NCBI RefSeq assembly: GCF_000143415.4
Contig: NW_003314308.1
Span: 1,158,654 to 1,222,653 of the forward strand
DNA from: Selaginella moellendorffii
Taxonomy: Eukaryota > Plantae > Lycopodiophyta
Reading direction: 5' to 3'
DNA length: 64,000 nucleotides
Shown here: one piece after another, positions 2,220 to 41,560 of the stretch
How positions within the stretch are numbered: the stretch's first letter is position 1
Layout: each line of letters starts with the position of its first letter
Program-made: the position numbers and the translations under genes
The notes under the pieces: generated by a model
What the model was told of the DNA's origin: nothing
The model's database searches: none
What the model saw: the letters and a program-made list of their open reading frames with translations, nothing else

Positions 2220-3457
2220 TCACTCCGGGGTGACGTAGGCGGCCGTGATGCCGCCATCAACGAGCAAGCTCGCGCCGGTCACAAAGGAGCTCTCGTCCGA
2301 CGCCAAAAACAATGCGGCTCTAGCGATCTCTGCTGCTTTGCCAAATCTTCCCATTGGAATGTGAACGAGCCTGCGATTTCTCTTCTCTTCGGTGTCCAAA
2401 ACCTGGTTAGCCAGCGAGCAATGAGATGATCATAGGAAGAACTCTTCGCTTACCTTCATCAAGAGCTCCGTCTGGATGGGTCCAGGACAAATGGAATTGA
2501 CACGGACCTTGTCACGGGCGTGGAGCACCGCGAGCTCTCGAGTTAGCGACAGTACCGCGCCTTTGCTCGCTGTGTAAGCAATCTGAGCGAGAGATCCATT
2601 AGATAGAAACCATAGAAATTCTTTTACTTTTTCTTAATCTTCTTCTTACTTGTGGTGCTGCTGCGCCTAGAAACGCGACAAAGGAGGCTGTGTTGATGAC
2701 CGAGCCACCACCTGATCTCTGGATCGCGGGGATGCCATATCTACACCCGTAAATAACTCCCTGTGCACGAAAAAGTAGCAAGGGATAAGGTTGGTTGCTT
2801 GATGGAATGCGTGGTGTTGTTATTCGGAAATGGATTACATACCTTGACGTTTATGTCGAGAGTTCGATCAATGACATCGTCTGGTGTGTTGATCGCATCA
2901 CCATCATTCGCGTCCATGATCCCAGCATTATTGAATAGTATGTGGAGACCACCAAACGCTCTCTGGACATTTGGAAACCAACAGAAATCACAGTTAGAAC
3001 ACTCCAGAAATGATCAATAAAAAATCCAGAAAATTTGGCACAAAAATCGAAAGAAGGTACCTCGGTCTCGAGCACCATTTTCTCGACGTCCGAAGGAATC
3101 GAGACATCACCACCGGCGATGGCGAGGCATTTGCCCCCAAATTCTCTCACCGCATCCACGGTTTTTGCCGCCCCGGAGACGCTCTTGTCCACCACAGCCA
3201 CACACGCGCCTNNNNNNNNNNNNNNNNNNNNNNNNNNNNNNNNNNNNNNNNNNNNNNNNNNNNNNNNNNNNNNNNNNNNNNNNNNNNNNNNNNNNNNNNN
3301 NNNNNNNNNNNNNNNNNNNNNNNNNNNNNNNNNNNNNNNNNNNNNNNNNNNNNNNNNNNNNNNNNNNNNNNNNNNNNNNNNNNNNNNNNNNNNNNNNNNN
3401 NNNNNNNNNNNNNGCCCTGCCAAATATTTTGCCGCGACGAAGCGCCGTGAAGAGCAT
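2220..3457 (-). CDS. Short-chain dehydrogenase/reductase of the microbial 3-oxoacyl-ACP-reductase-like group; multi-exon, partly in the N gap; possible mitochondrial presequence
   Basis: NNAG, NTASFVA, YxxxK (YTASK), [12 protein letters not shown]...[31 protein letters not shown]; candidate start [14 protein letters not shown] at 3457. Confidence 0.85.
3212..3413. other. Assembly gap (N run)
   Basis: About 200 Ns. Confidence 1.
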
Positions 3458-15555: not shown

Positions 15556-17640
15556 ATGGTCTCTAGGGTTTATGGCAAGCTGCCAGTAGGACGGAGGCTT
15601 CCTCGACCACCGTCGCTGGCATTCGATCGCGCTGCCAGAGATCCGCAACAGCAATCGCTCAGATCAGCTCTGCAGATCGACGCCGAGCAATATTTCCAGC
15701 ATCCATCCCCGGGGCCGCTTTCTCCAGCGATCTACGCATCCCTGCTCCGGCGATGCGCGAGTGCGCAGGCGCTGGCCGTTGGGAGGAGGATCGATGCCCA
15801 TATTTCGAGCTATCATCGCGATCCAGGTACTTTTCTTGGCAGTTTGCTCGTCCAGATGTATGGCAAGTGTGGAGACATCGACAGCGCGCGCCGGGTTTTC
15901 GATTCGGTGGGCGCCAAGACGGCATTCACTTGGAATGTGATGCTCGCAGCATATGCCCAAAATGGGCATTACAATCAAGCACTGGATTTGTTCCGGGAGA
16001 TGGGATCCAGACACAGGAATCCGGAGGAGAAGCCCAATGCCATCACCTTCTCGACTGTGACCAACGTCTGCTCGCTGTCTGGGGATCTAGAGGCCGGGAG
16101 AGCTCTCCATGCTCGAATTCTAGACAGCGGAGTGGAGCTTGATGACTTCGTGGGGACTTGCCTCATCAACATGTATGGCAAGTGTGGGAGCTTGGAGGAC
16201 GCGAAGAGATTGTTTGAGGCCTTGCCAAGGAGGAGTGTGGTGGCTTGGAACACCATGCTCGGCCTCTTCGTCCAGAAGGAACGCTGCGAAGAAGCTCTTA
16301 GTTTTTTCAGAAGGATGCAAAGCTCGGAGACAGTCGTCATCCCGGATTCAGTGAGCTATACAACTGCGCTGAGAGCTTGTTCGCTGCTGGAAACTTTGGA
16401 GGATGGGAGATCAGTCCATCGCGACTACTTGGCCAGTGGAATCAAGCCGGACGTAGTTTTTGGAAACACGCTCGTTAAGATGTATAGCGTCTGCGGCAGT
16501 GTGGAAGAGTCGAGGTACGCTTTCGACGCCATGCCGGAGAAGAACAGCGTCTCCTGGACAACCATGTCCGTCACATACACTCAGAGTGGCCGCCATCGAG
16601 ACGCGATGGAGCTCTACTGGACCATGAACTTGGAAGGCGTGAAGGCACACCAGGTGGTATTTCCAAGCGTTCTTAGCGCGTGCTGGGAGCTGAGACAAGG
16701 CAGAGACATCCACGCTCGGGTAGTTGCCGAAGGTTTTGATCGAGACACAGCCGTGGGGAATGCGCTAGTGACGATGTATGGGAAGTTTGGGGAGCTCGAC
16801 GATGCAAGGAGGGTTTTTCATGGCATTCCTGAGAAGACGGTCATTTCCTGGACGTCCATGATCGCGGTAAATGCTCAAAACGGAGAATGGGGGGAGGCCT
16901 TTCGGCTGTTTAAGACGATGAAGAGCCGGGGTGGTGTGAGGCCGAACGCCGTGACTTGTCTCATCATCCTTGACGCCTGCTCCGACGTTGGGACGGTAGG
17001 AGATGGCAGAGAAATCCATGCCGAGATAAAAGCCGGTGGATTGGACTCGCAACTCCGGGTGAACAACACGCTTGTCAACATGTATGGGAAATGCGGGAGC
17101 TTGGGCGATGCGAGGGAAGTTTTCGACAGCATGCGCGAGAGAAATGTGGTGTCTTGGACGTCCATGCTGGCTGCGTATACGCACCAGGGACACGGCAACG
17201 AGGCACTGGAACTATACAGGACTATGGAGCTTCAAGGCATGGAGCTCGACGACGTAGCATTCGTGAGCGTTTTATCAGCGCTCGGTCACGCAGGATCCGT
17301 CCACGACTGCCGGCAGTGCTTTATGACTATGGTCCGTGACCATGAGATCCAGACAATGGCAGAGCATTACAACTGCTTGATCGACTTGTTTGGTAGAGCC
17401 GGGTGGCTGGACAATGCCAAGGACTTGCTGGAAAGGATGCCGTTCGAGCCTGCTTACAAGGAGTGGATGACTTATTTGGGGTCGTGCAAGCTGCACGGCG
17501 ACTCTCACCGTGCTGCAGATGCTGCCAGGCGATGTGCCGATTTGAGGCCAGGAGTGGCCCAACCTTTCGTCATGCTGCTCAGCACGGTTGGCAACGAGGA
17601 CGACGCGGAGGAAACCGAATCAAAAGCCGACGCTCTCTAG
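15556..17640 (+). CDS. PLS-class PPR protein with E domain
   Basis: Canonical P-L-S triplets; HYNCLIDLFGRAGWL...MPFEP..W..YLGSCKLH. Confidence 0.95.
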   Translation: MVSRVYGKLPVGRRLPRPPSLAFDRAARDPQQQSLRSALQIDAEQYFQHPSPGPLSPAIYASLLRRCASAQALAVGRRIDAHISSYHRDPGTFLGSLLVQMYGKCGDIDSARRVFDSVGAKTAFTWNVMLAAYAQNGHYNQALDLFREMGSRHRNPEEKPNAITFSTVTNVCSLSGDLEAGRALHARILDSGVELDDFVGTCLINMYGKCGSLEDAKRLFEALPRRSVVAWNTMLGLFVQKERCEEALSFFRRMQSSETVVIPDSVSYTTALRACSLLETLEDGRSVHRDYLASGIKPDVVFGNTLVKMYSVCGSVEESRYAFDAMPEKNSVSWTTMSVTYTQSGRHRDAMELYWTMNLEGVKAHQVVFPSVLSACWELRQGRDIHARVVAEGFDRDTAVGNALVTMYGKFGELDDARRVFHGIPEKTVISWTSMIAVNAQNGEWGEAFRLFKTMKSRGGVRPNAVTCLIILDACSDVGTVGDGREIHAEIKAGGLDSQLRVNNTLVNMYGKCGSLGDAREVFDSMRERNVVSWTSMLAAYTHQGHGNEALELYRTMELQGMELDDVAFVSVLSALGHAGSVHDCRQCFMTMVRDHEIQTMAEHYNCLIDLFGRAGWLDNAKDLLERMPFEPAYKEWMTYLGSCKLHGDSHRAADAARRCADLRPGVAQPFVMLLSTVGNEDDAEETESKADAL

Positions 17641-31769: not shown

Positions 31770-33209
31770 ATGCAAGTGCACAATGTGGAGGAGATTCTTG
31801 CAAATCTATCGAGCACTTGCGATCTACTGGAGGGAAAGGTCCTCCACTTTCAGATCCAGAAAAGCCCGCATTGTCATGACAGATTGGTGGCCAACTTTCT
31901 GGTCCAAATGTACGGCAGGTGCGGCAGCCTCGAAGACGCACGGAAAGTTTTTGACACCCTTAGCAATCCCAACGTTTTCTCCTGGACAATGCTCGTCAAA
32001 GCATATGCCCATAACGGGCATCTTGAAGGTGCAAGAAGCATATTTGACGCGATGCCTATCCGAGATCTTGTCGCATGGAACACCATGATAAAACTTTATA
32101 CAGACAATGGTCGTTTTGATTCGGCTAGAACAATGTTTAACCTTATGCCGCAAAGAGACGTTGTCTCATGGAACTCCATGATCAAAGCAAATGCCCAATC
32201 CGGACTTGTGGATAAGGCTAAAGATGTATTTGATTCCATGCCGGAACATAATTTGATCTCGTGGAACTCGGTTCTCGCCACACTTGCTCAAGCTGGAAGA
32301 GAAGAAGAAGCGCAGGATGTGTTTGATCAAATGCAACTTCACGACCTAGTCTCGTGGACTGCGCTGCTCGTCGCATATACTCAAGCCGGGAATCTCCTTG
32401 TCGCAAAGTCAACGTTTGATAAAACGCCAGAACAAAACACAGTCTCGTGGACTGCCATGATTCAAGCCTATGCCCAACATCAGAAGCTTGAGGAGGCAAG
32501 ATCGATGTTTGACGGAATGTTGGAAGACAAGGTGGTGTCGGGGAATGCAATGATTGCCGCATATGCTTTGGAGGGTCAACTGGAACAAGCAAAGCTCGTC
32601 TTCTGCGATCTCATGCCGGATCACAGCCTGGTTTCCTGGAACGCAATGGTGACGGCCTACACTCACAATGGATTCTTCGCGACGGCCAAAGTGGTGTTTG
32701 AATCCATGCCTCACAAGAACACAGTGTCGTGGAACTGTCTGCTAGCGGGGATGAACCAGCACGGAGCATTTCGAAACCAAGCAAGCAAGTTCTTCCACCG
32801 GATGCCAAGCAGGGACTGCGTTTCGTGGACGAGCATGGTCGGAGAGTTCGCCCAATTCGGGGAGTGCGAGCGAGCAATGGAGGTGCTGCAAGCAATGGCT
32901 ATGGAGGGTGTGCGATGGAGCTTCTGCGGCCAGCCCCTGACGAGCGCGCTCGTCGCCTGCAGCAACACTGGGATGATCGGCGAGGCGAGAGTGCTGCTGC
33001 TAGCGGGGAGCTCAGATCACGGGCTTGATCCGTGGAGAGAGCACTACTTCTATATCATCGACGTGCTGGGGCGAGCGGGGCTCATCACCTCCGCCCGAGA
33101 TCTCGTCGCAAGCATGCAAGTCGCGGCGGATGATCCAGTCTGGGAGGCGCTGCTCAATGCGTGTAATTCTAGATGTAGGAGTATAAATTACAAGGATGGA
33201 ATAACTTAA
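31770..33209 (+). CDS. PPR protein dominated by 31-aa short repeats; C-terminus probably clipped by an AT-rich insertion
   Basis: Tandem VSWNxMIxAYA..G....A...FD.MP units; E-like HYFYIIDVLGRAG, after which the frame drifts into AT-rich DNA. Confidence 0.88.
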   Translation: MQVHNVEEILANLSSTCDLLEGKVLHFQIQKSPHCHDRLVANFLVQMYGRCGSLEDARKVFDTLSNPNVFSWTMLVKAYAHNGHLEGARSIFDAMPIRDLVAWNTMIKLYTDNGRFDSARTMFNLMPQRDVVSWNSMIKANAQSGLVDKAKDVFDSMPEHNLISWNSVLATLAQAGREEEAQDVFDQMQLHDLVSWTALLVAYTQAGNLLVAKSTFDKTPEQNTVSWTAMIQAYAQHQKLEEARSMFDGMLEDKVVSGNAMIAAYALEGQLEQAKLVFCDLMPDHSLVSWNAMVTAYTHNGFFATAKVVFESMPHKNTVSWNCLLAGMNQHGAFRNQASKFFHRMPSRDCVSWTSMVGEFAQFGECERAMEVLQAMAMEGVRWSFCGQPLTSALVACSNTGMIGEARVLLLAGSSDHGLDPWREHYFYIIDVLGRAGLITSARDLVASMQVAADDPVWEALLNACNSRCRSINYKDGIT

Positions 33210-33329
33210 TAATCATCCAAAAATTGTTCATCTCTACTTTTATCATATTTATAACTGTTTTTGGTTTGGTAGTGGATATATTTAGAATATGCTTGGATAT
33301 TTTAGAATATTCTACTATCGAACGGTTGT

Positions 33330-33575
33330 TATTCATTTAGATTAATCTTGTATTTATAATTTATAAACATATTTATAATTAATAAACTTTCTTAAACCCT
33401 TTTTAGTATATTCTTTTTTATTCTATCATTTAATGGTTGATATAATCTTGTGTTTATAAATTATAAACATGCTTATAATTATATACTTTATTTGATCAAT
33501 TGGATTAATAAGTAACAATTACACTACTATTAAGTAAACCAAGCATTACTACATGCAACAGGTAATAATTTATTT
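33330..33575. repeat. AT-rich dispersed repeat with an inverted copy at ~43735-44143
   Basis: Reverse complement matches 43735-43838 plus 44012-44143 (e.g. TTTATTTGATCAATTGGATTAATAAGTAA). Confidence 0.75.
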
Positions 33576-33721
33576 TTAAGATTGTGAGATGAAATAATTT
33601 TAAATTATTATGTATAGAGTTTAGAAAATTAAGTATGATAAACATAAAAATAATTGATTAAAAATGGGAAAATTAAATAAAATTTCTTCATTCGAACCTT
33701 AGGGTTCTTGGGAGCAATGCG

Positions 33722-35660
33722 ATGGTTGGGGCGGCATTGCTGCTGCTACTGGCTGGGCGGGAGGCATTCAGGTACTGCAATCTCCGACTACATTCCTCCG
33801 GATTCAAGGGTGCTCGCAACGCCGTCGAGTCGGCGCAGTTCTCGCGGGTACTTAGGAGCAGCAGGATCAGCCACGCCGTCCTGGGGAGCGGCGAGGGATT
33901 CCAAGAGCTGGACGAGATGCTAGAGAAGATCGCCACGATGCCCGATCCATCGCAGGGATATGGCTTCGTTCTCAGGCAGATTGGCGAGCGCAAGGCGCTG
34001 GCACAGGGCAAGCGCGTCCATGCTCACATCTTGAGGACCAGGAAGTGGAAGTCGAGCGCCGTCGTCTCCAATCTCCTCGTCCAGATGTATTGCCAGTGCG
34101 GCAGTGTGGATCTGGCGCGCGAGGTCTTCGCCGGCACGATCCATCGCAACGAGCAGTCGTGGAGCTCGATGATCGCGGGCTACGTCCACCATGGCCGCCA
34201 CAGGGAAGCGCTCGATCTCTTCCTCAACCTGGAATGCGAGCAGCGCGTCCAGCCTAATCGATCCATCTTCGCCAGCGCTCTCGCGGCTTGCACCCACTTG
34301 GGCGATCTGGAACATGGCCGAAGGATCCACGAGCGCATTCATCACTCAAAGATCGCTGGAGTTCACGACGTGGTGATTGGGAACGCACTGGTGACGATGT
34401 ATGCCCGGTGTGGGGATTTGGTGTCGGCCCGTGAGTTTTTCGAGGGGATGCGAGAGAAGAATGCCATGTCGTGGAACGCTATCATCTCGGCTTACGTCCA
34501 AGGCGGCCATCCCCGGAAAGCTCTCGAGCTCTTTGCGAGGATGACAGGGAAGTTAAACAGCTTCGTTTTCGCCAGCGCTTTCACTGCTTGCTCCATGGTG
34601 GGAGAGATTGATCTCGGTAAGAAACTCTATGCAAGGTTTGTCGAGAGTGGACTAAAGCCGGATTTGATCGTGCAGAACGCTCTGATGAGCATGTATGCCA
34701 AGTGTGGAGACTTGGACGAGGCGAGGAGGACTTTTCTCGAGCTTCCAACGCGTGATGTCGGTGCATGGGCGTGTCTCATGGCCGGATATGCTCAGCACGG
34801 AGATTTCGCTCGGGCTCTCGAGCTCTACAACAGGATGAGAGACGAGAAGGTGGAGGCTAACGCGGCCATTTTCTCCACGCTCATCGCGGCTTGTTCCACT
34901 CTGAAAGAAGGTGAGCTTGTGAGAGACCTTGCCTTTTCTTGTGGATTTGAGGCTGATCCAATCGTGCAGGCTTCTCTGGTCGGAATGTATGGGAAGCACG
35001 GCAAGATCGAGGAAGCGAGACGTTTTTTATAACATTCATGGCGAAAACAAAGACGTGGCTGCCTGGTCGAGCATCATTTCGGCTTACGCTCGGCACGGGT
35101 TGACGGACGAGGCTTTGAGGCTGTTTTGGAGGATGGTTTCTCGAGGGGTGGAGCCAAGTGCCATGATTTTCAAGAGCGTTATATGCTGCTGCGCGAGCGG
35201 TGAGGCTCTGGAGCAAGGCAAGGCCGTCCATGCACGGCTGAAGGAGAGCCCGGGCAGGGAAGACTCGGCAGTCCAGAACGCGCTCGTTGGGATGTATTGC
35301 AAGTGTGGGAGTCTGGACGATGCAAGAGCCGCCTTCGACGTGATCAAACGCAGAGATCGGCACACCTGGACGACCTTGATCATGGCTTACGTCCAGAACA
35401 GGAAGCCGGAGAAAGCGCTGGAGCTTTATCACGGCATGGACGTGGAACCCAACGAGTTTATTCTTGCCAGTGTTGCAGCAGCTTGCTCCAGCTTAGGTTC
35501 TCTCGAGCAAGGCATGGCTGTCCACTGTCGAGCAAAGTCACTCGAGCTTCTCGGGTGTGAGGTCCTGGGAACTGCACTGCTTGACATGTATGTCAAGTGT
35601 AAGAGACTGGACGAGGCCAGGAAACTCTTCTGGGAGCTCCAGGCTACGAACGTCCCCTAA
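33722..35660 (+). pseudogene. PLS PPR pseudogene (frameshift ~35025, truncated ~35640)
   Basis: PPR frame switches in the T6 run at ~35023-35028; no E domain; ends in unrelated sequence. Confidence 0.8.
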
Positions 35661-36261
35661 TGGTGGGAGGATACGCCCAACCTGGGGACTCGTCTCAAGC
35701 TCGAGAGACGTGGGCGTTCCTGGGGAGGATCAAAACGTCTCCGGGCTTGCAGCAGCTCATCACCGCTGCTTGAATTCCACACGTAGAGCCGTTCACCAAG
35801 GACCACGAGTACCCTGCTCCGAAAAGCTCGGCGGCCATTTGCTGCCCTTCGGCTATGGCTTCTTGTGGCAGTGCAAGTTATCTAGGCCTGGCAGCTCCGG
35901 GAGATGAAACTGGAAGAGTTGAGCTCCGAGAAGCTTGGAAATCGAAGAGGGCGTTGAGGAGCCGCGGCCGTGGCCTGGGAAGTGAAACGCAGCGGCACGC
36001 TCCTCGCCAGTTCTCTTGAGAGCTTCAAGCAAAGGAGCTGAGGTAGAAGGGAGCAGTATGATTGTTGAGCATAGCTGACAGGGAAAGAAGCACGAATACT
36101 TGATACACTATACTGCTTCAGGAATAGAATGCACAATACAGCACCCCCCTTTATTTAGGGTGGGCCCCTTTTGCTTATTCATTACCATAAATTAAAGATT
36201 GTCCTAGTATATTATTTTCAATTATTTTTAAGTATTTATAAGTACAAAATCAAATATACTA

Positions 36262-37264
36262 TTTATTCTATTATAACAGCATTCTCTTGATTGTATAGCT
36301 TAATATGACTGTATAGAATATTAAATGCAGCTTCCTTTCTTTCAATATATATTTTTCGCTAAATATATTCTTGAAAGTAAGAGCTGTATAATCCTTTTGT
36401 TGTACCATAGTGAGGAAAAGATCTTTTCACTGCATTCCATATTGATTCAATATGATTTGCATGAACTCTAGTTATGGGATCAACAAAATTTTAAAAGTGG
36501 TTGACTATATAATGAATGAAGTTCAATTAATTCAACCACTTTGAATTATAACTAGCCCAACAATCACTATATATATTTGTTCCTAAAAAATTAATTATAA
36601 TTATTAGTTAAGAATAATAGTAGAAATAGAACTTACCTGGTCTAACATATGTATATAATATATCAGTTAAAGTTTGTGTAGTACAATAGGCCACTGAAAC
36701 CATAAACATTCGATCCAAATCACGTTCAATTCCTCCAACAACTCACCGGCCTTCTACTCTTCTACCACGATTATATTTCCACTTGCCAAACTTACTTTCA
36801 TTAATTTCCACAATTCTTCCTAGACCATCAATTTTTTTACTACCTCATTGTAATGTGATAACACAAATATCACGACAAAAGTTGTACCAATTTGTTGTTG
36901 TGTGCTCACTTTTAATACTACACTCAATATGAGTTTTATCTTGTGGCATTTTAATGCACCAACAATACATCACTTTAAGCATTTGAGCAAATGTGAGATT
37001 ACTATTTGCAAACCATGTATTAATTCTAAGAGATTTTGTGGTATTGCAATTTTTACAATTCCACTTTAAACCATCTTTACAACCTCGATTATTAGATCAA
37101 TATCTTATTGGTCGATGGCATCTTTCACATTCTCTCCCTTGTGGAAGAAGACTAACCGTAATACAAAAAGTAAAAGAATTTACTTTACTATTAGTTCTCT
37201 TAATAAGATCAGAAAAAGAAAGAATACTATCTTGAGTATGATCTACATATTCCAATCTAGCCAT
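36262..37264 (-). mobile_element. Degenerate Merlin/IS1595 (ISXO2-like) DDE transposase with a 54-bp spliceosomal intron
   Basis: Manual translation: CERC...WNCKNC zinc ribbon, WYNFCRDIC, IVEINESKFGKWKYNRGRRVEGR*VVGGIER, RPG|TNIYSDCWASY, VNHF*NFVDPITRVHANHIESIWNAVK; intron 36636-36583. Confidence 0.88.
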
Positions 37265-38058
37265 AATACTAAAGAGAATGAATAAAATTAAACCAATTGT
37301 AGATTATATATTTATAAGTTATAGCCATTCATTCACTAGCTAATTAAAAAATTATAGTTGTTAACATATCTGTTAACAACATCTACTAACTAAAGTTTAA
37401 CGTTACTAATTTAGAGTTAGTCATTAAACATTTAGGGTGCAAAGCTGGGCGTGACTAAGCATACTATGAAGGAAGCAAGGGGTGAGCGTGGCAAAGAAGC
37501 AACCACATAAAAGAGGGGGGTGTTGTATTATGCATTTCCTAGAAGCTTTCATCTAGTGACACAAAAGTCTCCAACTAATTCTTCTCTTCCACAAAAGTGT
37601 GGAGCAAATTCCTCCAGCAAGGGAAAAAATGCCAGAATCAATTTAGAGTGAGTAGTGTTACAGCATAAACAATCAGAGTGTTTACATGAGTTTATTTAGC
37701 TTCTCCAATGCTTGTTTTACATCTTCAACACTTGCAATTTTCTTAAGTAAATTGTTTATCGTCTTCAATGCATAATATTTATGCCCTTTTCTATTTTTGA
37801 ATGCTTGAATGACAATTCCATTATTGGGCTGCAAGCAAAAGGACTCTGGCTTGTCGTCCACAATCACTGTGTGTTTGAGGTCCCGCCTTAATCTCAAGAG
37901 ATCCTTCACAACCTTTTTCCCTTTGACTTCCTTAGTCGAGCACGAATCTTTGTAGAGATGATGGGCAAAGAGATTCCCAGCTAGGTTGAGCTTGTCCAAA
38001 GTCTTGTCCACATATGGCTTGATTGCTCAAGTAAAAACCACAATCTCATATATCTTAC

Positions 38059-39546
38059 TGTAACGTATATAAATATGGGATGAGATTTGGATATACTGTT
38101 ACTGTGGATCCTTACAACTTTGGAGAATAAATAAGGATAAAATAGCTATTAAAGGCTTTTTCATCAAGTAATTACCTCATTGTAAACTCTTGAGTTTGGA
38201 CTTCCCAAGAGATCACCCAACCCAGTACTATTCAAACCCAAAGATGCTTAACTCCAACTATTGCTTAAAGATGCTTAACTCTTAACCGATTGGAAAAGGG
38301 GGTGCGCTCTTGTTTATGGGCCCTTTCCTTCTATATTTGAACCTCAACGGATTGTCTCTCAAATTCACGCCTTCGTGAACGGAAATTGAGAGCCGCAGCT
38401 CTCCCGAGAGCCCCGCTCTCTTGACACCCTACCCCTCGGGTCGAGCACAGTAGAAGTAAACTAGACCAGCCAAATGTCAATCAACATGTGGTGTGATTCC
38501 CCTAGCCAACCAATAGAGTGTAAGCAACCAAAGGGAACAACTTGAGAGACGATCCGTTAGGGTTCAAATATAGAGGGAAAGGGCCCATGAGCTAACATAC
38601 AGTCGGATCCGACACCCACTCTAATACCGAATGTAACCTCCTGAGTTTGGACTTCCTAGGTCACCCAACTCAGTAATATTCGAACCCAAGGACGTTTAAC
38701 TCCAACTATCCCAAGACCCTTAACCGATTAGAAAAGAGAGACGATCCGTTAGGGTTCAAATAGTACTGGGTTTGGCTTAGGAGCTTACATAGAGTCGGAC
38801 CCGACACCCACTCTAATACCAAATGTAAGCTCCTGAGTTTGGACTTCCTAGGTCACCCAACCCAGTAATATTCAAACCCAAGGACGTTTAACTCCAACTA
38901 TCCCAAGACCCTTAACCGATTAGAAAAGAGGGTGCACTCTTGTTCATGGGCCCTTTCCCTCTATATTTGAACCCCAATGGATCGTCTCTCAAGTTGTTCC
39001 CTTTGGTTGCTTACACCCATTTCTAGTTGGTTTAAGAGGAGAAAGATAGGGTATGCTATATGTGGTATCAGAGCAAATGGCATAAGTGGCTACTTAAAAA
39101 TATAATATACCCTTGAGTAAGGTATATTCTTACCTTTAAATTTGAAATTATACGTATTAGGCATCCATACGTACGTCCTTCCTTTTGGTGGAGCATCTAT
39201 GGACGAAGGTATCCACCGTAAGACTGCAGTACAGGTGACTAGTTGCCTCACATGGAATAGTTAATCTACATAATGGAAGGATTTGTATATTCAATGTGAA
39301 GATAAAAATGTTTGTTCCTTTTGGCTCAGTAGGGGTTGTTAGTCAATAGTTAATGAGGACATTGACATCTCTGAAAGGGGGTGAGTGTAACACATATGAT
39401 TATGAAATGAGATTTGGATATACTGTCATCATAGATCCTTGGAACCTTGGGAATAAATAGGGATAAAATAATCATTAAAGGTTCTCTCATTAAGTGATTA
39501 CCCTTTTTCCAATTGGTTTAAGGGAAAAAAGATAAATCATGCTACA
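38059..39546 (+). mobile_element. TRIM (miniature non-autonomous LTR retrotransposon)
   Basis: ~161-bp LTRs (39386-39546, TG...CA; left copy 38059-38180 + 39016-39060); PBS TGGTATCAGAGC 39063-39074; PPT GAAAGGGGGTGAG 39373-39385; TSD CTTAC/TTTAC. Confidence 0.9.
38181..39015 (-). mobile_element. Cassandra-like TRIM with 5S-rRNA-derived LTRs, rearranged tandem, nested in the left LTR of the host TRIM
   Basis: 192-bp LTR TGTAAGC...GCTTACA (38824-39015) plus copies at 38181 and 38632; each carries a 5S-like A/C-box core; degenerate tRNA-iMet PBS; TSD CTCAT/CCCAT. Confidence 0.82.
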
Positions 39547-39880
39547 TTTACTCATCTCTTTTAAAAAGTTATTCACACCTGGCCTCTTTGCCACAAGGTA
39601 GCATTGTAGTGAAATAGTTTCCCCACTAAAGAGCTTGAGGGACACTATGGCCTTGTGAGCATGGATTAATGTCTTATTTATGTCCAACACAAACATGGGT
39701 TTCTTCTCCAAAGCTGGCAGCAGTAGCAAAAAATGGTTTAACAACTTCACCTTTTTCTTTTTCTCTTTAGTGGTGATGTCAAGCATCACAAAACTCCACT
39801 CCTACTCCTGTGGCTTTTTCATAGATGATAGAAACAATGTAAGCCCTAGCTTAATCATAACAAACCTTTATATATCAAGT

Positions 39881-41560
39881 TTAATTTTGGCTAAGCAGCA
39901 CATAGAAATTTGACTGTAACACCAACCCTAGCGCCGAGAGTCTCTGGGCAGCTCGAGCTCCACACTCAAAATCCTTGTGAATCTTCTGGCAAGCAGCCAA
40001 CAGTGAGACCCAAGCAATGCTTTCGGGCTCGAAGGGCATGTTGTGGATGAGCTCCTCGGCCTTGTCCAGCTCTCCAGCCCTTGCAAATGCGTCAATAAGC
40101 CCACAATAGTGTTCTCCTGTGGGCTCGACTCCATAGTCCCAAATCATTGATTGGAAGTAGTCTCGAGAGATTTTCACCACGTCTGAGTGGCAGCATGCTG
40201 CAAGCATGCTTGTAAAGACTATGTGATCAGGCATCATGCTCTCCTGGATGATCCTATGGAAGGTTTCCAAGGCCTCAGTTACATGCCCAGTGGAAGCATA
40301 CATGGCCACCATTGCAGTCCATGAGACCAAGTCTTGCTCTGGCATTCTCTCGAACCAAACTCGAGCTTCCAAGAGGAGTCCCTTGTGAGCAAAGCCAACC
40401 ACTATTGCCATCCAGGCGATTGCATTGCGCTCCTCGATTGCCTGGAAGAGGCTTATCCCTTCTTGGAGGTGGCCATTCCAGAGATAGGCCGAGAGGAGTG
40501 CTGTGCTCGCCATCTTGCTATTGTAAGGCATTTGATCGAAAATAAACTTTGCATTTTCAAGATGGTTTCTAGAGGCGAGCATATGGATCATTGTTGTCCA
40601 AGAGATCTCATCGCGGTGAGCCATCTTTTGGAAACAATCTAGTGCCTCATTCAAATGCCCATTTGCGGCATATGCTCAAAGCATGGAGTTCCAAGCCACC
40701 ACGTCTTTGTTTGGCAGCCTCTCAAACAAGGCTGTAGCCTCTTCCACGCAGCCATTAGATGTGTAGCCGTCCATCATAGCCGTAAATGCCACCTCATTAA
40801 GATCCGGAGCATCTTCAAAGAGAATCTTTGCTTGCTCCGTGTGCCCTGCCTGGGCATATGCTGTGATCATGGTCGTCCATGTTACTACATTCCTTGTGGG
40901 CATTCTATCAAAGAGATCCTTAGCTTCATCCAGCCGTTGGTTCTGGCAGTGGCCTTGGATCATGGCCGTCCACGCCACCACGTCCTTTTGGGGCAGGGAA
41001 TCGAACACCTCACGCGCGCGTAAGAGATGCCCGTTATGGGCATATGCCACGATCATGGCGGTGCTAGAAACGAGGGTTTGCTCCGGCATGGAGTGGAATA
41101 CCGCCTCCGCCTCGCCGAGATTGCCAGTCTGCGAGTACATCTCGATCATCACGTTCCAGGTGATGGAATTCTTGGCAGGGATGCGATCGAAGAGCTGCTT
41201 GGCGCGCTGCACGTCTCCGGCCGCGGCGTATGCCGAGATCATGGCGTTGCTGGACACAATCTCCTGCTGCGGCATGCTTTCCAGGACCGATCGCGCCTGC
41301 TCCAGGTCGTGGTTGCGAATGTAGGCCTGGAGGATGAGATTCCAAGAGAAGAGATTGCGATCCGGGGTGGAATCGAAGACCGATCGCGCTTCCTCCAGGC
41401 AGCCGCAGCGGCCATACATCTGGACGAGGAGATTTCGCAGGAAAACGCTGTTCTTGTGGTCGCTGTGAAGGATCTGGGCGTGGATCTGGCGGCCATCGCT
41501 GGGATTGTCGCAAGATCTGACGAGGGCGGCAAGCTCTTGGACGCCAAGAACGCGCATCAC
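39881..41560 (-). pseudogene. PPR gene (short-repeat type, E domain) with a single in-frame TGA
   Basis: The two ORFs share one frame: VVAWNSML*AYAANGHLNEALD; stop at 40678-40676. Confidence 0.85.

Follow-up and report, generated by a model that had tools for sequence, protein, structure and literature searches.

Positions 36121-37542 (minus strand) of the 64,000-nt stretch of Selaginella moellendorffii DNA analyzed here, hereafter the window, very probably represent a full-length, dead copy of the S. moellendorffii Merlin family (Repbase Merlin-1_Smo), an IS1595/Merlin DDE cut-and-paste transposon. More tentatively, and with somewhat more doubt than confidence, we propose from sequence comparison that a 54-nt segment in the transposase gene is a spliceosomal intron gained within the S. 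moellendorffii lineage, that a sibling copy on NW_003314411.1 is intact, and that a land plant may thus still hold a mobile Merlin. The element is 1.42 kb long, with a GC content of 30% compared to 55% in its left flank and 48% in the whole window; this composition step, the inverted repeats, and the register of sibling copies place the ends to within 1-3 nt. It lies between the 3' end of a NIF-phosphatase gene, whose last exon occupies 37685-38011 (minus strand), and the 5' end of a decarboxylase-like gene, represented by an Orn/Lys/Arg-decarboxylase-like (OKR_DC_1) exon at 35698-35838 (minus strand).

Neither the family nor this copy is new. Lopes et al. (2021, PLoS One 16:e0251133; PMC8101967) described Merlin elements in S. 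moellendorffii, S. kraussiana, and S. tamariscina and found no signs of contamination, noting, with reference to Repbase and to Yuan & Wessler 2011, that Merlin-1_Smo was already in Repbase. The window copy is their entry NW_003314308.1_1194264_1196917, and both of its junction strings are present in the S2 Appendix of that paper. Hence, the original prediction, made from the letters of the window, was right in recognizing a Merlin/IS1595-type relic among the genes of a land plant (the NIF phosphatase exon, the OKR_DC_1 exon, and a PPR gene) but not in regarding it as an overlooked plant Merlin lineage, since Merlin families had already been catalogued in this lineage. The presence of Merlin in a land plant is nothing new by itself. 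What remains of value is a correction of the literature, in which the truncated domain of the Selaginella elements would be an artefact of an unrecognized intron, and a datable lineage-specific intron gain within a transposase gene.

The transposase is read in one minus-strand frame from 37264 down to 36263 (334 codons, including the natural TAA) with no frameshift. Exon 1 (36637-37264) begins with an ATG at 37262-37264 and encodes a putative zinc ribbon and the first catalytic block, and exon 2 (36263-36582) encodes SDCW (D at 36563-65) and NFVDP..HIES (E at 36446-48) and ends with the natural TAA at 36263-65. The predicted ISXO2/Merlin motif series (a CxxC...CxxC zinc ribbon, VEINESKFGKWKYNRGR, SDCW, and VNH..NFVDP..H.NHIESIW) is real and lies entirely in this frame. 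Seven stops break it, one within the 54-nt segment and six outside: TGA at 37097-99, 36845-47, and 36743-45 in exon 1 and TAA at 36527-29 and 36491-93 and TAG at 36359-61 in exon 2. These six stops explain why no long open reading frame was listed for the transposase, an omission that the prediction had remarked upon. The putative zinc ribbon, CERC ... CKNC, aligns with the Cys pairs of relatives, and Pfam PF12760 is matched by neither the pieces nor the relatives. The second catalytic D (SDCW) and the E (IES) are retained, and the first D is replaced by N (VEINES, codon 36800-36802), leaving the D, D, E triad incomplete. With six nonsense codons and this Asp-to-Asn change, the window copy cannot transpose. 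All three residues are present in the sibling on NW_003314411.1, so that loss of the Asp reflects decay of the window copy and is not a property of the family.

Comparison with the published Selaginella copies, here and below, was made by eye. Relative to the well-preserved NW_003314411.1 sibling, the six stops arose as CGA>TGA twice, TGG>TGA, CAA>TAA twice, and TGG>TAG, and the Asp codon changed from GAT to AAT. All six stops and the Asp-to-Asn change are therefore C>T or G>A, the pattern that would be expected of a silenced, cytosine-methylated repeat. A frame with six stops and zero frameshifts, in which the TGA at 36743-45 aligns to an invariant Trp and the TAG at 36359-61 to the Trp of some relatives, could alternatively be read in the variant code of a foreign donor, with TGA specifying Trp and TAA/TAG specifying Gln or Glu. 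The probability of this is negligible, and a variant genetic code was ruled out because siblings have sense codons (CGA, CAA, or TGG) at all six sites. At the exon 1 stops and the D site, for instance, the sibling reads CGA, CGA, TGG, and GAT by eye. Furthermore, position 36360 is C in reads from most other copies, giving TGG at 36359-61 in place of the TAG of the window copy, and TGG is used for Trp elsewhere in the window copy itself.

Assignment to Merlin rests on the DDE_Tnp_IS1595 domain, which is diagnostic of the superfamily (PMC8101967). Because the stops chop the domain into short pieces, a direct Pfam match was limited to the 43-aa piece at 36362-36490 (E 0.002, 18.6 bits; cut-off 27), and one piece matched NCBIfam transpos_IS1595 at a subthreshold 14 bits. 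The 43-aa piece nevertheless recovered 81 proteins at E<=1e-3 among 1.84 billion representatives, and 10 of 10 long matches passed Pfam DDE_Tnp_IS1595 (PF12762). A local profile of 297 positions was built from 11 full-length matches, each passing PF12762, and the eight frame pieces are collinear on it, at positions 3-38, 48-123, 127-157, 160-198, 197-210, 215-223, 226-268, and 278-289; seven of the eight placements are independent of how the matches were found. Thus, the profile search suggested with the original prediction fell short of threshold on the single pieces, and the domain was established through collinear mapping on the 11-protein profile. Nearest full-length relatives show 49-57% identity over the pieces, those with names being a Mytilus ISXO2-like transposase and a Scutellospora protein. 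A protein homologue search with an 83-aa piece returned no match.

The ends of the element are also those of a Merlin transposon. By definition (Feschotte 2004, Siguier 2009), Merlin elements have terminal inverted repeats of 24-462 bp that begin 5'-GG, and an 8- or 9-bp target duplication. The window copy conforms to the first part: GG starts both arms (36121-22 and 37538-39), a 23-nt core (36128-36150 versus 37514-37536) pairs with 2 mismatches where shuffles predict 0 chance matches, and a gapped inverted repeat reaches ~45-55 nt. The arm on the 5' side of the transposase spans 37494-37542 (minus strand) and that on the 3' side 36121-36179 (plus strand). From the register of siblings with clean target duplications, the termini fall at ~36121/36122 and 37539-37542; by eye, the first 12 nt of the 5' arm differ from those of siblings by a 3-nt gap or three mismatches. 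The inverted repeat had been predicted at 36115-36162 versus 37501-37546, and the repeat is real, although its ends lie ~6 nt inside 36115 and 37546. The 64-kb window holds no second copy and no miniature element sharing these repeats.

The target duplication is where the window copy departs from the Merlin definition. Among 40 x 45 boundary pairs, the best 8-mers match at 6/8 positions, and ~7 such pairs are expected by chance, so neither an 8- nor a 9-bp duplication is recognizable. The sequence GCTTCA abuts the left end (36115-36120, plus strand) and GCTTTCA, which resembles it, is found at 37545-37551, 5 nt beyond the right GG; these flanks are possibly a remnant of the duplication, with a match that is not above chance. 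Just outside the two ends (36113-36120 and 37540-37551), 6-8 nt are mutually inverted, GCTTCAG and GCTTCTAG, so that the locus reads ..TGCTTCAG / element / CTAGAAGC.., without direct duplication. By contrast, inspection by eye found 8-bp target duplications in five of six siblings, three of them perfect (GAGGAGTC, GCCTACGC, and AAGAATAA) and two matching at 7/8 (AGGAGATT/GGGAGATT and GTGATTGT/GTGATTGC), with 5/8 in the sixth. A search for 8-9 bp duplications had been part of the original prediction, and it succeeds in the siblings rather than in the window copy. The odd flanks of the window copy may reflect decay of the duplication, or the 5' terminus may have undergone a small rearrangement.

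Central to our proposal is the 54-nt segment at 36583-36636 (minus strand), a candidate spliceosomal intron reading GTAAGT...CTAAT...TTTTTTAG that lies in phase 1, has an in-frame TAA inside it, has a GC content of 15%, and is bordered by CCAG and GAAC. This is exactly where a 54-bp GTAAG..TTTTAG intron had been predicted within the PG|T motif. The donor carries the full AG|GTAAGT consensus, and CTAAT occurs ~20 nt upstream of a T-rich AG acceptor. On the profile, exon 1 reaches position 197/198 and exon 2 picks up at 197, and the 54 nt are therefore without counterpart in relatives; none was found in any homologue aligned, in the DNA of the Mytilus gene, or in the S. kraussiana and S. tamariscina copies. 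Removing the segment restores exact collinearity, with relatives reading PG-T (or KGS, RGS) ungapped, as is expected of a spliceosomal intron with GT...AG borders. Its length and composition also suit the host, in which introns have a median length of 59 bp and a mean of 110 bp (PMC3729371 Table 3) and a length distribution unlike that of other land plants (PMC6157073). Taken together, these features are, at the level of sequence, those of a spliceosomal intron whose size is typical of the host. At the intron site, DNA of the S. kraussiana copies (..YVEKGSTIYSDCW..) and of S. tamariscina (..YVARGSIMFSDCW..) is uninterrupted, which confines the intron, in all the sequences compared, to the S. 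moellendorffii family; parsimony would favor gain over loss in its history.

Alternatively, the 54 nt may be an in-frame insertion or indel that bears GT and AG by chance, in a family that encodes a truncated protein as published. The length is divisible by three, the published analysis ends the open reading frame within the segment, and no RNA reads cross it; contigs from RNA-type runs are confined to 35705-36243, with none over the transposase body and none spanning the 54 nt. We consider this explanation unlikely. It does not account for the exact collinearity with ungapped relatives, the consensus donor and the CTAAT ahead of the acceptor, or the resemblance in length to the median host intron. 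In addition, GTAAGT and AG are retained, by eye, in 5/5 siblings keeping the region, and exon 2 of NW_003314411.1 stays open for ~106 codons past the intron stop, which by a rough estimate at 30% GC would have a chance of ~1e-4 if the sequence were untranslated.

A spliceosomal intron would also change how the published copies are read. According to Lopes et al. (PMC8101967), active copies are absent from Selaginella because the domain is truncated, and CD-search in their data finds the domain of the published S. moellendorffii protein incomplete at its C end; the word "intron" has 0 occurrences in the text of the paper. By eye, ...PGKFYFYYYS closes three of the four "proteins" published for S. 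moellendorffii: their translation passes beyond exon 1 and terminates at the in-frame TAA of the intron, which explains the reported truncated domain and lack of an active copy. The S2 Appendix entry NW_003314411.1_249986_252639, for example, lists the first 218 residues and ends inside the intron. In that copy, by-eye reading finds exon 1 open, an intron of 54 nt (GTAAGT...GTTAG), and ~106 open codons in exon 2 up to a TAA. D, D, and E are all retained and the 8-bp target duplication (GAGGAGTC) is perfect; there is one Gly-to-Arg change in the GGIER block. Judged by these features, the two-exon transposase gene of NW_003314411.1_249986_252639 (~315 codons) seems to be intact. Both the intron overrun of the published proteins and the intact exon-by-exon reading of this copy seem to be unreported. 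If the intron is real, it overturns the published view that Selaginella Merlins are only truncated, with at least one listed copy intact (~315 codons).

The workings of such a copy can be outlined from the families involved. The two-exon gene would be transcribed and the 54-nt intron spliced out, yielding a ~315-aa transposase that would bind the GG-terminated inverted repeats and carry a zinc ribbon at its N terminus. The transposase would then excise the element, and reinsertion at another site would create an 8-bp target duplication. Provided that the best-preserved copy is spliced and active, no candidate autonomous Merlin other than that of S. moellendorffii would be known among land plants.

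The published S. moellendorffii copies, of the Merlin-1_Smo family, have termini, a MARLEYVD... start, an intron, and an exon structure in common with the window copy, which is more decayed than its siblings in its six stops, its D>N change, and its lack of a recognizable target duplication. Further afield, by eye, the Merlins of S. tamariscina and S. kraussiana encode a collinear transposase with the same motif series but lack an intron at PG|T, reading ..RGSIMFSDCW.. or ..KGSTIYSDCW..; in S. tamariscina the 3' terminus is also much like that of the S. moellendorffii family, and an 8-bp target duplication is likely. The ISXO2-like transposase of Mytilus (XP_076106327.1) shows 49% identity over ~197 aligned residues in five pieces, has the same zinc ribbon/D/D/E order, and passes Pfam DDE_Tnp_IS1595 at 74.8 bits. 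It differs in that its gene is a single, intronless 1032-nt exon with contiguous Pro-Gly-Thr codons, an intact open reading frame, and different termini. Bacterial IS1595 elements (ISXO2-like, IS1016 group) share with Merlin the catalytic domain family and the 8-bp target duplication rule (Feschotte 2004, Siguier 2009), but they have no introns, and the direct match to them is weak (14 bits, one piece), with none on plasmids. The window copy is clearly closer to the eukaryotic Merlins than to bacterial IS1595.

Recent horizontal transfer into S. moellendorffii, for instance from an animal or fungus, might be suspected from an element of 30% GC in a window of 48% GC, from nearest named full-length relatives that come from a mussel and, in another case, a glomeromycete fungus, and from the patchy occurrence of Merlin in plants (PMC8101967). 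We regard such an arrival as highly improbable. The S. tamariscina relative, compared by eye, has protein motifs very similar to those of the S. moellendorffii family (YDSEWL.QLN..HYTVNHSQNFVDP), and the 3' ends of the two are nearly alike (TATTATGCATTCTAGCCC versus TATTGTGCATTCTACCC); a further relative exists in S. kraussiana. Moreover, the intron is host-like and restricted to the S. moellendorffii family, which indicates evolution inside that lineage. Since the element ends of a close relative in S. tamariscina are almost the same, long residence in the genus, as originally suggested, is favored over a recent horizontal arrival, and ancient transfer into an ancestor of the genus Selaginella is possible.

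Most Merlin-like matches in plant assemblies are contamination (PMC8101967), and a contaminating bacterial IS1595 sequence or a misassembly therefore had to be considered here. Junction and copy-number data refute this explanation, the likelihood of which is minimal. Plant genes flank the element on both sides within one contig, and contig X8 from a different study spans the left junction without mismatch (36014-36209), providing read support for that junction, a check that had been called for at the outset. The family is multicopy, with 371 contigs of 90-99% identity to the element in one DNA run of S. moellendorffii and dozens of diverged copies among the contigs, and it is multicopy in independent S. 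moellendorffii runs as well; assembly GCA_000143415.2 contains roughly 90 copies. Reads and contigs from other genomic copies diverge from the window copy, as loose ends, beginning at 36125, which likewise shows the family to be multicopy. The 3' flank of NW_003314390.1 is identical to one such loose end and so links the reads to a published copy. The presence of a GT-AG intron, the failure of a tblastn search with the 43-aa piece to match any of 72,556 plasmids, and the report of Lopes et al. (PMC8101967) that no contamination is evident for Selaginella also speak against a bacterial source.

Several further observations concern the surroundings of the element and its relatives. Contig X8, from an RNA-type run, continues past 36209 with 12 A residues absent from the genome, and an ATTAAA is found at 36191-36196. 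This suggests that X8 is a plus-strand transcript polyadenylated in the transposon end, antisense to the transposase, and it may represent the 3' UTR of the PPR gene ending at 35660. That gene, left of the element, consists of two overlapping open reading frames in different frames (33722-35032 and 34929-35660, plus strand), both rich in PPR repeats, and the split gene at 33722-35660 could be a frameshifted pseudogene or could reflect a sequencing error or an intron. Exons of the decarboxylase-like gene on the opposite strand begin only ~35 nt from its end at 35660. A 5S-rRNA-carrying, Cassandra-like TRIM has been proposed at 38181-39015; an Rfam scan of 33000-41000 at gathering thresholds matched no family, 5S included, at a stringency below which a rearranged 5S fragment could score. 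Positions 3212-3413 are an assembly gap of 202 N. In Mytilus galloprovincialis (OZ263149.1), two Merlin-like genes lie ~20 kb apart and are 100% identical over 2.5 kb including flanks, and both are in glycosyl-hydrolase-like host genes, a pattern better explained by recent segmental duplication than by two transpositions. Finally, the PPR open reading frame at 15556-17637 of the window (694 aa) is present exactly in NCBI, in a 90% cluster with SELMODRAFT_116494 and XP_024543440.1 of Selaginella moellendorffii.
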